Both the position numbers and the translations under genes were made by a program. A DNA stretch of 63,431 nucleotides, the filler included, from Octopus bimaculoides (lineage: Eukaryota): NCBI RefSeq assembly GCF_001194135.2. It is 6 parts of 6 records of this genome, joined end to end, with 100 filler letters (N's around TTAATTAATTAA, not from the genome) between each part and the next. Parts side by side here need not be neighbours in the genome. Positions count along the whole stretch, not along the records: positions 21,066 to 41,972 come from NC_069010.1; 5 more parts are not named here. One strand, given 5' to 3'. Below are positions 25,871 through 37,409 of the stretch, piece by piece (positions within the stretch are counted from its first letter, which is position 1; each line of letters opens with the position of its first letter). Below the pieces are notes generated by a model, which worked only from the letters and a program-made list of their open reading frames with translations, searched no databases and was not told where the DNA came from.

Positions 25871-26389
25871 TACTGCTGTTGTTGCAAGTGCTGGTGTCAC
25901 ATGCTACTGGCACAGGGGCCAGTCAGGCAGCACTGGTAATGACCACACTTGAATGGTGCTTTTTACATGCAGCCAGCATGGGAGCCAGTCCGGTGGGACT
26001 GGCATCGACCATGCTTGAATGGTACATTTTACGTGCCACGGGCACAGGTGCCAGTTAGGTGGCACTGGCACGGGTCATGACAATGATATGTTTGCGTGTG
26101 TCTTTGTATCTGTGTTTATCCCTCATTACTGCTTGACAACCGGTGTCGGTGTGTTTATGTCCCTGTAACTCAGTGGTTTGGCAAAAGAGACAATGGAATA
26201 AATATCAGGCTTGAAAAATAAATACCGGGGTTGTTTCATTTAGCTAAAATTCTTCAAAATGGTACTCCAACATGTCTGCAGTCTAATGACTGAAACAGGT
26301 AAAAGAAATATATGAAGACGATGATGTTAACAAGACATTTAATTAAATTCTACCCCTTTCATTCATTTCAGGATTGTACATTGTGAAAC

Positions 26390-26453
26390 ATGGATCCAGA
26401 CATTGTGATTAGTTATGATATAAAAGACCTTCCATTTGTGGAAAGACTAGCTG
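26390..26453 (+). CDS. Coding exon 1, TIR box 1 (MDPDIVISYDIKDLPFVERLA)
   Basis: Acceptor ttcatttcAG at 26370-71. In-frame TGA lies just upstream of aaacATGG, so 26390 is the likely start. Donor G|GTGAGT. PDIVISY matches TIR box 1 (SARM1 PDVFISY). Confidence 0.9.
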
Positions 26454-26534
26454 GTGAGTATTTTATTAATTTCATATTATTATTATTCAGTAGTTTTATT
26501 TTTATAGTGTGCTTTCACTTCACTACCGAGCGCA

Positions 26535-26787
26535 GCTCTGTGTGCCTTGGCTATGTGCTGTGGTTTGCTGTGATGCTCTTATGGTTACTGTATTGAAAGG
26601 GTTTTGCGTAGGATGTGTGCAGTGCCCAGTAGTGCAATTTTCTGTACGTTATATATATATTTGTAAGTCCTGGTGGTTTTGTTATGTATCTGTCTGAATA
26701 TTTTTTTATTATACCTAAGGCACCCACTATGATAGGAATTGTTTCTGTTTTTAGATTCCACATTCGAGTTACCTCTGATTCCAGGTC
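26535..26787 (-). mobile_element. RLE-type (R4/Dong-like) LINE 3' end in intron 1
   Basis: Minus strand encodes DLESEVTRMWNLKTETIPIIVGALGIIKK...QKIALLGTAHILRKTLSIQ*, the typical C-terminus of a restriction-like endonuclease LINE ORF. Confidence 0.8.
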
Positions 26788-26815
26788 CAAAGACAAGAAA
26801 AAAAAAAAAATTTGT

Positions 26816-27041
26816 TAGACCGTTGCCAGTACCGCCTGACTGGCCTTCGTGCGGGTGACACGTAAAAGCACCCACTACACTCTCTGAGTGGTTGGTGTTA
26901 GGAAGGGCATCCAGCCGTAGAAACTCTGCCAAATCAGATTGGAGCATGGTGTTGCCATCCGGTTTCACCAGTCCTCAGTCAAATCGTCCAACCCATGCTA
27001 GCATGGAAAGCGGACGTTAAACGATGATGATGATGATGATG
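26816..27041 (+). mobile_element. Family D 3' fragment in intron 1
   Basis: Ends gaaagcggacgttaaacgatgatgatg. Confidence 0.78.
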
Positions 27042-27281
27042 AGTGTTATCAGTGGTAATAAGGAACAGCTTTTGAAGGTGGCAGCTGGCAGACACAATTA
27101 GCATTGCTGGGCAAAATGCTTAGCGGTCTTTACATTTTGAGTTCAAATTCTGCCGAGGTCGATCTAATCAACTGACCCCCCCCACTCCTCAAAAAGTTCA
27201 GATCTTGTGCCGAGAGTAGAAAAGAATAACATAACAGCTTTTACTGTGTCTGACTAACTCTTGTCGTCATCTCTTCTACAG

Positions 27282-27394
27282 CTGAACTAAAACCTTATGA
27301 CTGGAAAGTTTGGTATGACAAGCTGCCCAGCTCTATAAACTCCACTGTTGAGTATTCAACCTCACAACGTGGACAGGCTGTGGTTAAATCAAAG
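27282..27394 (+). CDS. Coding exon 2, TIR domain (AELKPYDWKVWYD...GQAVVKSK)
   Basis: Branch-like tgactaac near 27251, pyrimidine tract and acAG acceptor; donor AAG|GTGAGA. KVWYD corresponds to the TIR betaB V(F/W)xD motif. Confidence 0.92.
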
Positions 27395-27807
27395 GTGAGA
27401 TGTCTTCTTTCTTTTTTCCTTTGTTTTTTACTTGTTTTAATTATTGGACGGTGGGATATTTGCTGGGGCACTTCCTTGAAGAGTTTAGCCAAACAAATTG
27501 ACCCTAGTGCTTTTTTTTTTAAATTTATTTAAGCCTGGCTTTTATGTATATACTCTATCAGTCTCTTATATTGGACAAATAAGTTACGGTGATGTAAACA
27601 AACCAACACCAGTTGTCAAGCAGTGGTAGGGGACAATAATAAACATAAAGTGACGCACGTATATATGTATATATGCATGTGTGTATGTATGCATATATAT
27701 ATGTATGTATGTATATATATATATGTATGTATATATGTATATGTGTGTGTATATATATATATATATCCCAATATATATATATATATACACACACATATAT
27801 ATATATA

Positions 27808-28036
27808 GGGCAGCAAGCTGGCAGAATCGTTAGGACGCTAGGCGAAATGCTTAGCGGTATTTCGTCTGTCTTTATGTTGTGTGTTCAAATTTCCCCTAGG
27901 TCGACTTTGCCTTTCATTCTTTTGAGGCTGATTAAATAAATACCAGTTATGTACTGGGGTTGATGTAATTGACTTAATCCCTTTGTCTGTCCTTGTTTGT
28001 CCCCTCTATGCTTAGCTCCCTGTAGACAATAAAGAA
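27808..28036 (+). mobile_element. Family C SINE in intron 2
   Basis: Head, core, and ttgtctgtccttgtttgtcccc...aataaagaaata tail. Confidence 0.8.
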
Positions 28037-28047
28037 ATATATACATG

Positions 28048-34458: not shown

Positions 34459-34974
34459 TTTAAGAGATAAATTTTGAAAGCTGCATTCCCTCGCTTTCAG
34501 TAAATATGTTGCTTATTTTTTGGTAGTTTTTGACTTATTTAGTCCCTCGAAGCGTGAGGCATTACTACACAGTTAATGCCCTTTATAATAAAATTATTTA
34601 TATTTATGAAAAAATGATGAATTTTTTTCATTACGAAATTTTTTCATTATTTTTTTCATTATGAGGTTTTTTTCACGCTGACTACNNNNNNNNNNNNNNN
34701 NNNNNNNNNNNNNNNNNNNNNNNNNNNNNNNNNNNNNNNNNNNNNNNNNNNNNNNNNNNNNNNNNNNNNNNNNNNNNNNNNNNNNNNNNNNNNNNNNNNN
34801 NNNNNNNNNNNNNNNNNNNNNNNNNNNNNNNNNNNNNNNNNNNNNNNNNNNNNNNNNNNNNNNNNNNNNNNNNNNNNNNNNNNNNNNNNNNNNNNNNNNN
34901 NNNNNNNNNNNNNNNNNTAATTAAATTGAAATTAGAAGTAGGGGTTGGAGGTACATTAATTTGGTTGAACCTTG

Positions 34975-35193
34975 TTTTCTATCTATCTATCTATCTATCC
35001 ATCTCTGTCTATCTTCTATCTGTATGTCTTTCTCTATCTATCTATCTATCTATCTATCTACTTATCTACCTATCTATCTATCTATCTATCTATCTATCCA
35101 TCCATCTGTCTATCTATCTATCTATCTCTGTCTGTCTATCTATCCATCCATCCATCTATCTCTGTCTGTCTATCTTCTATCTGTATGTTTTTC

Positions 35194-35229
<36 letters not shown>

Positions 35230-35350
35230 ACTGTCTGTCTATCTATCTATCCATCCATCCATCCATCCATCTATCTATCTCTGTTTGTCTTTATCTATCT
35301 GTCTATCTATCTATCTCTGTCTGTCTTTATCTATTAGTCTGTCTGTCTGT
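34975..35350. repeat. (ATCT/GTCT/ATCC)n tetranucleotide tract immediately upstream of exon 5
   Basis: Directly visible. Confidence 0.95.
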
Positions 35351-35392
35351 CAATAAATAAATAAATAAACTATATTTGCCTCTCCTACTCAG

Positions 35393-35494
35393 GTTCCTAT
35401 TCCTCACCTGCTGTTTTACACTTTCTGGAAGATATGTTACATGAATCTGACCCAAATATTCGTGCTGTTGCAACCATCGCCCTGGCCAAAGCAG
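35393..35494 (+). CDS. Coding exon 5, HEAT repeat (SYSSPAVLHFLEDMLHESDPNIRAVATIALAKA)
   Basis: Acceptor cctctcctactcAG; donor GCAG|GTAAGT; phase 1-1. DPxIRxxAxxAL is a HEAT/PBS-lyase-like motif. Confidence 0.92.
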
Positions 35495-35689
35495 GTAAGT
35501 TTACTCTTAAATTCTATTTCTTATCACATTTCGTAGAACACCAGACTCCCAGTAAAGCATAAGAGATGAACACTTATGAATCCAACTATTTTTATTTAGC
35601 CACAGTGTATCTAGGAGTACACTGGTTGATACTTTAGCATTTAAACTGGCCATATCCAGTCAAAATATTCTACTTGTTTTTTTATACAA

Positions 35690-36404
35690 ATCAACTAGAT
35701 CTAACCTCACCCTACAATGTCATTCTAAAAATAAACAAGCACATCATTGAAATCTCAGAGCAATAAGATAATGCATGATTCATTCAAAGCCAGGCCAGAT
35801 CCAGCCTCTCACACCTACTCTACAATGTCCTTCTAAAAATAAACAATCACATTATTGAAATCTCAGAGCTATGAGATAATGCACAATTAATTTAAAACAA
35901 GGCCAGATCCAGCCTCTCACACCTACCAAACAATGTCATTCTAAAAATAAACAAAGACATCATTGAAATATCAAAGCCATGAGATAATGCATGATTAATT
36001 GAAAACAAGGTCAGATCCAGCCTCTCACACCTACCCTACAATGTCATTCTAAAAATAAACAAAGACATCATTGAAATCTCAAAGATTTGAGATAATGCAT
36101 GATTAATTGAAAACAAGGCCAGATCCAGCCTCTCATACCTACCCTACAATGTCTTTCTAAAAATAAACAAGCACATCATTGAAATCTCAGAGCAATAAAA
36201 TAATGCACAATTAATTCAAAACAAGGCCAGATCCAGGCTCTCACACCTACCCTACAATGTCATTCTAAAAATAAACAATCACATCATTGAAATCTCAAAG
36301 CTATGAGATAATGCATGATTAATTGAAAACAAGGCCAGATCCAGCCTCTCACACCTACCCTACAATGTCTTTCTAAAAATAAACAAGCACATCATTGAAA
36401 TCTC
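35690..36404. repeat. 108-bp tandem array in intron 5, at least 6 units, runs into a gap
   Basis: (c/t)cagatccag at 35795, 35903, 36011, 36119, 36227 and 36335. Confidence 0.93.
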
Positions 36405-37270
36405 NNNNNNNNNNNNNNNNNNNNNNNNNNNNNNNNNNNNNNNNNNNNNNNNNNNNNNNNNNNNNNNNNNNNNNNNNNNNNNNNNNNNNNNNNNNNNNNN
36501 NNNNNNNNNNNNNNNNNNNNNNNNNNNNNNNNNNNNNNNNNNNNNNNNNNNNNNNNNNNNNNNNNNNNNNNNNNNNNNNNNNNNNNNNNNNNNNNNNNNN
36601 NNNNNNNNNNNNNNNNNNNNNNNNNNNNNNNNNNNNNNNNNNNNNNNNNNNNNNNNNNNNNNNNNNNNNNNNNNNNNNNNNNNNNNNNNNNNNNNNNNNN
36701 NNNNNNNNNNNNNNNNNNNNNNNNNNNNNNNNNNNNNNNNNNNNNNNNNNNNNNNNNNNNNNNNNNNNNNNNNNNNNNNNNNNNNNNNNNNNGGGGTAGG
36801 GGGTACAAACACAGATACAAAAACACACACACACAACTATATATATATATATATATATGTATGTACACACGGCGGGCTTCTTTCAGTTTCCATCTACCAA
36901 ATCCACTCACAAGGCTTTGCTTAGTCTGAGGCTATAGTAGACACTCGCCCAAGATGTCACCCAGCGGGACTGAACCCGGAACCATGTGGTTGGGAAGCGA
37001 ACTTCTTACCACACAGCCACGCCTGAGCCTAGTAGCATTTCCTCCATCTTTGCATTCTGAGTTCAAATTCCACCAAAGTCAGTTTTGCTTTTCATCCTTT
37101 CGGGGGTCAATAAAATAAAGTACCAGTGAAGTACTGGGCAGAGTCAATGTAATCAATTTCACTGCCCCCTCAAAATTGCTAGCCTTGTACCAAAATTTTA
37201 AATCATCATTATTATTTTTGTTGTTGTTTCCTTCATTGTGCCATGACCACCCCTCATTATTTGTTGGCAG

Positions 37271-37409
37271 GTAAAGGATCAAAGAGAGAAACTGCAGAGA
37301 AGATACTTCCAATGCTCCAAGACAAGGACCGGATAGTAAGAGAGAGCGCCGTGCTGTCTTTGGGTAAACTGAAGGACCGTAGCTGTGTGAAAGCCATCAT
37401 AGATCGCTG
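37271..37409 (+). CDS. Coding exon 6, HEAT repeat (KILPMLQDKDRIVRESAVLSLGKLKDRSCVKAIIDR)
   Basis: Acceptor ttgttggcAG; donor TG|GTAGGT. DxDxxVRxxAxxxLGxL is a HEAT motif. Confidence 0.92.

Follow-up and report, generated by a model that had tools for sequence, protein, structure and literature searches.

An annotated, conserved and uncharacterised octopus gene for a protein with TIR, probable Cbl-type pseudo-EF-hand and HEAT modules, represented here without its last exon

Which gene occupies positions 26372–37409 of a 63,431-nucleotide stretch of Octopus bimaculoides DNA (the window, at its full length; RefSeq assembly GCF_001194135.2), is it complete there, and what kind of protein does it encode? 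The locus lies in the part of the window that comes from NC_069010.1 (21066–41972), which is AT-rich (40% GC), clearly eukaryotic, and contains many N gaps and repeats. An earlier note on this DNA had described a hidden six-exon gene for a protein with a TIR domain, a Cbl-like EF-hand and HEAT repeats. We found that the region is the first six of the seven coding exons of the annotated gene LOC106869059. The gene is neither hidden nor new. It is annotated, conserved and uncharacterised, and it appears here without its last exon.

The identification rests on the translated exons. The window translation was identical over 390/390 residues to the O. bimaculoides protein XP_052834120.1 (UniProt A0A0L8HSV3, 'TIR domain-containing protein'), and the window sequence was located in O. 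bimaculoides CM046630.1. The orthologues from O. sinensis and O. vulgaris (LOC115226206; XP_029653084.1 and CAI9744179.1) have 436 residues and are 98% identical over residues 1–390. A tblastn search with the O. vulgaris protein recovered every window exon at the same borders. The corresponding O. vulgaris locus shares these exons and has seven in all. Farther away, a bivalve genomic contig (L001, ENA ERZ26168041) has exons 3–6 and their splice positions in common with the octopus gene; its counterpart of exon 3 lies at 480–638. A coding sequence of 65% identity is present in a Logan contig of 2313 nucleotides (SRR8281678) as a single uninterrupted open reading frame (ORF) of 445 residues, whose protein aligns without gaps across all window exon junctions. 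We interpret this contig as the assembled spliced transcript of a relative. The description of the gene as hidden did not hold, as the identical protein stands in RefSeq and UniProt and many animals have clear, annotated orthologues. The earlier note had also named clear orthology to a well-described protein as a counter-argument, and this applies in part: clear annotated orthologues do exist, and they are uncharacterised. A search with exon 4 alone as the query had returned only three exon-sized ORF fragments, which suggested that there was no annotated homologue; the full-length and exhaustive searches overturned that impression.

The gene model was rebuilt independently on the + strand from splice sites, reading frames and a phase-constrained search. 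All introns between the six exons (Table 1) are GT–AG with good polypyrimidine tracts, and the exon start phases are 0/1/0/2/1/1. The product comprises 389 full codons and TG, or 390 residues if reading extends into the TAG at 37411–37413. An in-frame TGA lies just 5' of the ATG at 26390. The AG at 26370–26371 suggests that exon 1 may begin at 26372, giving an 18-nucleotide 5' untranslated region. Exon 1 encodes TIR strand A (DIVISY) and the beginning of helix A, and exon 2 encodes strand B and the diverged, low-confidence BB-loop region. Exon 2 was picked, by its splice sites and TIR-like sequence, from all open AG...GT segments of compatible phase that lie between exons 1 and 3. The orthologue confirmed the choice, with 92% identity to the O. 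vulgaris protein (P0004) by tblastn. Another candidate for the second exon, VLDMGGGKLEIYRGFIRQIRE (28681–28746), was dropped for its poor acceptor and wrong phase. Raw three-frame translations of 26300–31050, with stops as X, gave no TIR match by Pfam because the exons are too short. The sequence from 21066 to 26372 held no further gene, only low-complexity and repeat-derived ORFs. The rebuild and the orthologue search thus bore out the six exons, canonical splice sites, matching phases and 389-residue frame proposed before. The proposed start, 26372, is the first base after the AG 18 nucleotides upstream of the ATG, and the proposed end, 37409, falls exactly at the donor TG|GTAGGT. The motifs quoted in support (HRLTAIENLG, PNIRAVATIALAKAG, RIVRESAVLSLGK and FW..HF....ISW..F) were all found in the translation.

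As a description of the whole gene, the 389-residue frame turned out to be incomplete. At face value, the gene could truly end at the TAG at 37411–37413. It would then encode a 390-residue protein without a fourth HEAT repeat, either because the gene is truncated in this species or because an isoform retains the intron. In favour of this, the TAG is in frame, and both public O. bimaculoides models end there at 390 residues. We consider this very unlikely. The TAG sits within the consensus donor of exon 6, TG|GTAGGT, and the position of this donor is conserved in the bivalve contig (TTG|GTAGGT after the homologous codon). The O. vulgaris and O. sinensis proteins run on past residue 390 with RNDPVNGVRQVAQEALAQIGGEEADRCVAITKLLMSEIEALKTKS, 45 residues more. 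In the O. vulgaris genome, this extension comes from a seventh exon, located 4.66 kb beyond exon 6. It adds a fourth HEAT repeat and a helix at the C-terminus (residues 391–436 of the orthologue), which lie outside the piece analysed here. A C-terminus beyond exon 6 was present in nearly every full-length family member retrieved. Exon 7 was not found by tblastn (word size 2) in 37414–41972. It was also absent from the O. bimaculoides locus (L004) to 10 kb downstream and from the sequence beyond the assembly gap there. This gap, 4197 N long (L004 25584–29780), begins one base past the end of the piece, at the expected position of exon 7. The TAG thus reads as intronic sequence, not as a true stop. 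Because it lies inside the donor, the orthologues have exon 7 and the gap covers its expected site, the public 390-residue models are most probably cut short by the assembly and lack the last 45–46 residues.

The complete orthologue was modelled with AlphaFold2 from a 17-sequence alignment (mean predicted local distance difference test score, pLDDT, 72). The model consists of a TIR domain (residues 1–145), a disordered Ser/acidic linker (146–201), a helix-loop-helix pair with short strands in both loops, followed by a long helix (204–296), and eight HEAT helices (300–433). The Foldseek matches of the model comprised alphaRep HEAT proteins and the TIR domains of RPS4, RPV1, AbTir, TLR15 and SPARTA. 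The Kyte–Doolittle maximum over 19 residues was 1.15, and neither a transmembrane segment nor a signal peptide was found. Because there is no membrane-spanning hydrophobic segment and the TIR domain begins at residue 4, the protein is predicted to be soluble and cytosolic. The order of TIR, Ser/acidic linker, Cbl-like EF-hand pair and HEAT repeats, as well as the cytosolic nature of the protein, agreed with what the earlier note had proposed. For the order, TIR_2 and HEAT_2 exceeded the Pfam cut-offs and three weak tests pointed concordantly to Cbl. No paper on the TIR, HEAT and EF-hand architecture turned up in a literature search that covered TIR-HEAT, the locus names and TIR adaptors of amphioxus. 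The view that this architecture is not recognised as characterised therefore stands, as no functional study of it was found.

In the HEAT part, Pfam assigned HEAT_2 with 59.1 bits against a cut-off of 27.7 and HEAT with 29.3 against 23.5. The full protein has four HEAT repeats, three of which are encoded in the window, in line with the previous count of at least three. They resemble the PBS-lyase/alphaRep type (HEAT_2, HEAT_PBS) in their repeats of about 31 residues with a ..D.d..VR..Aa.aLG.. signature, and the family profile matched alphaRep proteins at E down to 1e-48, with fold matches as well. Unlike PBS-lyase HEAT proteins, the octopus protein has just four repeats, fused to signalling domains, and no lyase function is implied.

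For the stretch between the TIR domain and the HEAT repeats, three independent tests, each weak, agreed in their direction. The Pfam family Cbl_N2 (PF02761) matched 9/17 family members at E up to 1 (best 1.6e-3). The sea-cucumber member passed the curated cut-off of this family, with 22.8 bits against 22; apart from this borderline case, the module was above threshold in no precomputed Pfam list or Pfam scan. A profile of the middle domain, built from 24 members and run against all PDB sequences, ranked Cbl and Cbl-b first, as the only ones matched at E of about 1e-3 (Cbl 1.3e-3). The match fell on FWRKAFGEKTIVPWKSFRQ, the Cbl segment that fits the family motif FW.r.FG.k..VpW..F. A separate AlphaFold2 model of the domain (pLDDT 82; predicted template modelling score, pTM, 0.74) showed a helix, a loop with a strand and a helix, twice. 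The top 35 Foldseek matches of this model were all TKB domains of Cbl, Cbl-b or Cbl-c (probability up to 0.96, E 0.1–1). The predicted helix-loop-helix pair superposed on the Cbl TKB EF-hand over 72–89 alignment columns with a root mean square deviation of 3.4–4.3 Å. The statistics of this likeness are weak, with E of 1e-3 by sequence and 0.1–1 by fold. Residues 203–295 are probably a Cbl-type pseudo-EF-hand pair. Neither loop has canonical calcium ligands in the octopus protein. The second loop, DIFHCEQKLDRE, has no ligands at positions 3 and 5 and is without the oxygen ligands through which Cbl binds calcium. The pair is probably calcium-free, to judge from its sequence. The octopus protein also differs from Cbl in having no four-helix bundle, SH2 domain, linker or RING domain. 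Without a four-helix bundle, SH2 or RING, it is therefore not a member of the Cbl family.

The same architecture was found in bivalves, gastropods, a brachiopod, a nemertean, a bryozoan, an orthonectid and an acoel, and further in a hemichordate, a sea cucumber, amphioxus (several copies), Ciona and a sponge (Geodia barretti, P0199). Since the choanoflagellate Salpingoeca urceolata (P0028) has it too, the TIR–EF-hand–HEAT architecture predates animals. Neither the 30 clusters looked up nor the named hits of the exhaustive search included a vertebrate or an ecdysozoan. Names such as 'uncharacterized', 'hypothetical' or 'TIR domain-containing protein' stand on nearly all named entries. Two labels deviate, 'FAM65A' and the automatic 'protein tirA-like', and neither is informative. 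We found no support for the label 'FAM65A' on one amphioxus homologue, which is a probable mis-transfer. Some proteins have other layouts. A protein-kinase fragment precedes the TIR domain and HEAT repeats in the EukProt protein P0180. P0066, P0127 and P0128 (1773–2208 residues) have several tandem TIR domains and long HEAT/ARM arrays, and they match the PADLOC models ThsB, SAVED-TIR, pAgo-TIR and HEAT-ARM_XIII.

The family comprises two subtypes. The canonical one has the motif SK[YF]C.DE, whose aromatic residue takes the Trp position of WxxxE, and a VWVD..gL.aG BB loop. It is present in deuterostomes, in the acoel and in a second octopus gene of the same architecture (P0027/P0205; LOC115211707 in O. 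sinensis, LOC106868728 in O. bimaculoides). The subtype of the window gene, which has lost this aromatic residue and has another segment in place of the BB loop, was seen in lophotrochozoan entries only. The octopus has two paralogues, of which the window gene is the diverged one.

Families of this kind have been noted before. Gerdol et al. reportedly classified the ecTIR-DC families in 2017. A review describes invertebrate cytosolic TIR-DC proteins as largely uncharacterised (PMC10279657), and the conserved ecTIR-DC families are apparently absent in vertebrates (PMC6321704). As far as can be seen from the citing papers (PMC6321704, PMC5549309 and PMC10279657), these families resemble the octopus protein in their cytosolic TIR domain, their presence in many invertebrate phyla and their proposed adaptor or regulator role. 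The same citing papers give no architecture for the present family. Two amphioxus-specific TIR adaptors, not tied to the TIR–EF-hand–HEAT family, negatively regulate MyD88/TICAM signalling (PMC6043800), which counts in favour of an adaptor role.

For the TIR domain, Pfam assigned TIR_2 (PF13676) with 49.8 bits against a cut-off of 28; residues 5–134 cover profile positions 1–121 of 122, and 17/17 aligned family members matched. AlphaFold2 gave a flavodoxin-like beta/alpha fold, with strands at residues 5–8, 60–65 and 88–93 and helices between them. WxxxE is a known motif of TIR domains. Its Trp position is occupied by T74 (30816–30818) in the window gene and by H, Q or L in the mollusc orthologues; the canonical paralogues have Tyr or Phe there. 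The BB loop reads VWYDKLPSSINSTVEYSTSQRG in place of the canonical VWVDe.gL.aG.dF. It forms a longer segment, predicted to be disordered in the window paralogue, with pLDDT < 50 at residues 38–44. The Glu position varies across five lineages: the closest non-octopus relatives (P0166 and P0167) and the choanoflagellate have Asp, Littorina has Gln, and Watersipora and Geodia have His. No PADLOC defence TIR model was matched by the TIR domain of the window gene's orthologue. The octopus paralogue and an amphioxus member matched ThsB, SAVED-TIR, pAgo-TIR and others.

With the Trp changed to Thr74, the BB loop replaced, the Glu variable among lineages and no PADLOC TIR match, we favour a non-catalytic adaptor or regulator role over a SARM1-like NADase. 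On balance, we think it probable that this LOC106869059 member, with the architecture described above, is a cytosolic TIR adaptor or regulator. Its TIR domain would make TIR–TIR contacts with receptors or other adaptors, and the EF-hand/HEAT module would serve as a platform for protein binding or regulation. Cleavage of NAD+ would be a less likely role for the window protein.

Several observations count against this reading. No functional, expression or interaction data were found for the window protein or for any family member. The relative arrangement of the domains in the AlphaFold2 model has low confidence (pTM 0.40). The octopus protein itself gave no Cbl_N2 match in the Pfam scan, and each single link between the middle module and the Cbl EF-hand is weak, although three are concordant. 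The best solved-structure matches of the TIR domain by sequence profile were the NAD+-cleaving Cat1, AbTIR and SARM1. E78 (30828–30830, exon 3, helix C) aligns with E642 of SARM1 and with the Glu of the AbTIR YEL motif, the catalytic E208.

The last two points, together with the TIR_2 type of the domain, would suit a regulated TIR NADase or signal-nucleotide synthase, in which the EF-hand/HEAT part acts as a sensor or autoinhibitor in a SARM1-like manner with reversed order. The canonical members, including the octopus paralogue and amphioxus, also keep the aromatic residue, a GxG-type BB loop and the defence-TIR matches. For the window gene, we regard this as rather unlikely in view of the substituted Trp, the replaced BB loop, the inconstant Glu and the missing PADLOC match; moreover, no SAM or other oligomerisation domain was found by the Pfam scan. 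Since it keeps the aromatic residue, the canonical BB loop and the defence-TIR matches, the paralogue LOC106868728/LOC115211707 would be a better enzyme candidate.

The octopus protein and SARM1/TIR-1 both join a helical-repeat domain to a bacterial-type TIR domain and have Glu at the E642 position. Unlike SARM1, with its order of ARM, SAM, SAM and TIR, the octopus protein has its TIR domain first, no SAM domains and no mitochondrial targeting. Its repeats are of the HEAT_2/PBS-lyase type and not ARM, an EF-hand pair stands between the domains, and the WxxxE Trp and BB loop are lost. Judged by these features, it does not belong to the SARM1 family; the reversed order and the absence of SAM domains had already been used to set it apart from SARM1.

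A broader enzymatic proposal concerns the family as a whole. It could represent a second line of regulated TIR enzymes, separate from SARM1 and inherited from the animal–choanoflagellate ancestor, in which the EF-hand/HEAT part would gate NAD+ cleavage or signal-nucleotide synthesis. We consider this doubtful. If it were true, the window gene would either encode a member that is still active or one that is catalytically dead and regulates the canonical paralogue LOC106868728.

The protein could also stand outside immunity, as a scaffold with a housekeeping or developmental task (in trafficking or the cytoskeleton, for instance) that is built around the HEAT/EF-hand module and uses the TIR domain as a mere protein-interaction fold. 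Genomes usually carry one or a few copies of the family, whose conservation reaches back to a choanoflagellate, unlike fast-evolving immune expansions, and its most strongly conserved columns lie in the HEAT and EF-hand parts. Nothing points to another pathway, there is no neighbouring gene context, and nearly all known animal TIR proteins act in immune or cell-death signalling. Such a scaffold seems unlikely, and the adaptor or regulator remains the reading that we prefer.

As a discovery, the locus carries little weight, as the gene and its protein were already in public databases. Its value lies elsewhere. The public O. bimaculoides models are most probably truncated by the gap, so that HEAT repeat four and the final helix are missing from them, and the unannotated stretch of 95 residues between the TIR domain and the HEAT repeats is a probable Cbl-type pseudo-EF-hand. 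The family is old, has single or low copy number, was not seen in vertebrates here, and divides into two subtypes, of which only one has the enzyme-type TIR signatures. It is therefore a tractable system for the question whether non-SARM1 TIR proteins of animals act as enzymes or as scaffolds.

Table 1. Exons, assembly gaps and repeat copies at the locus, in window coordinates
Feature	Position	Strand	Remarks
Exon 1, coding part	26390–26453	+	ATG; residues 1–21 and first base of codon 22; donor G|GTGAGT
Exon 2	27282–27394	+	Residues 22–59 (AELKPYDWKVWYDKLPSSINSTVEYSTSQRGQAVVKSK); GTGAGA donor, good polypyrimidine tract
Exon 3	30774–30922	+	Residues 60–109; TIR strand C, helix C, strand D
Exon 4	33362–33963	+	Residues 109–310; TIR end to about residue 145 (33470); disordered Ser/acidic linker, residues 146–202 (33471–33641); Cbl-like pseudo-EF-hand pair and long helix, residues 203–295 (33642–33920); first HEAT helix from about 33930
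Exon 5	35393–35494	+	Residues 310–344, HEAT repeats 1/2 (SYSSPAVLHFLEDMLHESDPNIRAVATIALAKAG); 100% identical to P0004
Exon 6	37271–37409	+	Residues 344–389 and TG of codon 390; HEAT repeats 2/3; donor TG|GTAGGT
5' part of intron 6	37410–41972	+	Full of interspersed repeats; no tblastn match
Assembly gap in intron 4	34686–34917	.	No coding sequence missing
Assembly gap in intron 5	36405–36792	.	Entered by 108-nucleotide tandem repeat; no coding sequence missing
SINE-like copies	31139–31362, 34138–34365 (-), 36809–37031, 37899–38122, 38853–39084, 23561–23725		
Second repeat family copies	23041–23371, 26820–27042 (-), 31589–31921, 39429–39635, 41766–41972 (-)		

Two assembly gaps interrupt the introns of the gene. 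No residues are missing at the junctions ENLG|SYSS and AKAG|KGSK in the orthologue alignment; the junction residues are contiguous in the orthologues, and the gaps of introns 4 and 5 therefore conceal no coding sequence. Whether the DNA is continuous across them is thus immaterial to the coding sequence. Intron 5 contains a minisatellite (35601–36440) with a 108-nucleotide unit in at least 6–8 copies of 81–91% identity. It runs into the N gap at 36405 and probably accounts for it.

Two interspersed repeat families were also observed. The introns and flanks contain a SINE-like (short interspersed nuclear element-like) element of about 220–350 nucleotides, with at least six copies that lie in either orientation; the copies are 74–92% identical, and their translation yields a recurrent ORF motif. 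The second family has copies of about 200–330 nucleotides, one of which forms the very end of the piece. It is young, because its copies are 92–97% identical.

In the bivalve contig, the 3' end of the orthologous exon 5 and its GTAAGT donor are tandemly repeated head to tail about seven times at L001 11750–12170, with a 53–54-nucleotide unit (PNIRAVATIALAKSGK|gtaagt...). These repeats are either a real tandem duplication of a splice donor within the intron or an assembly artefact.

Long low-complexity tandem arrays, none of them coding, lie at 24311–24682, 27618–27843, 34962–35322 and 24813–25900 of the window. They include a TA/CA-rich array with a period of 8–10 nucleotides, which gives 'YIYIHTHT' ORFs, and an array with a period of 8 nucleotides ('LSIYLSIY'). 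An array with a 66–67-nucleotide unit flanks both sides of the gap at 24983–25447.

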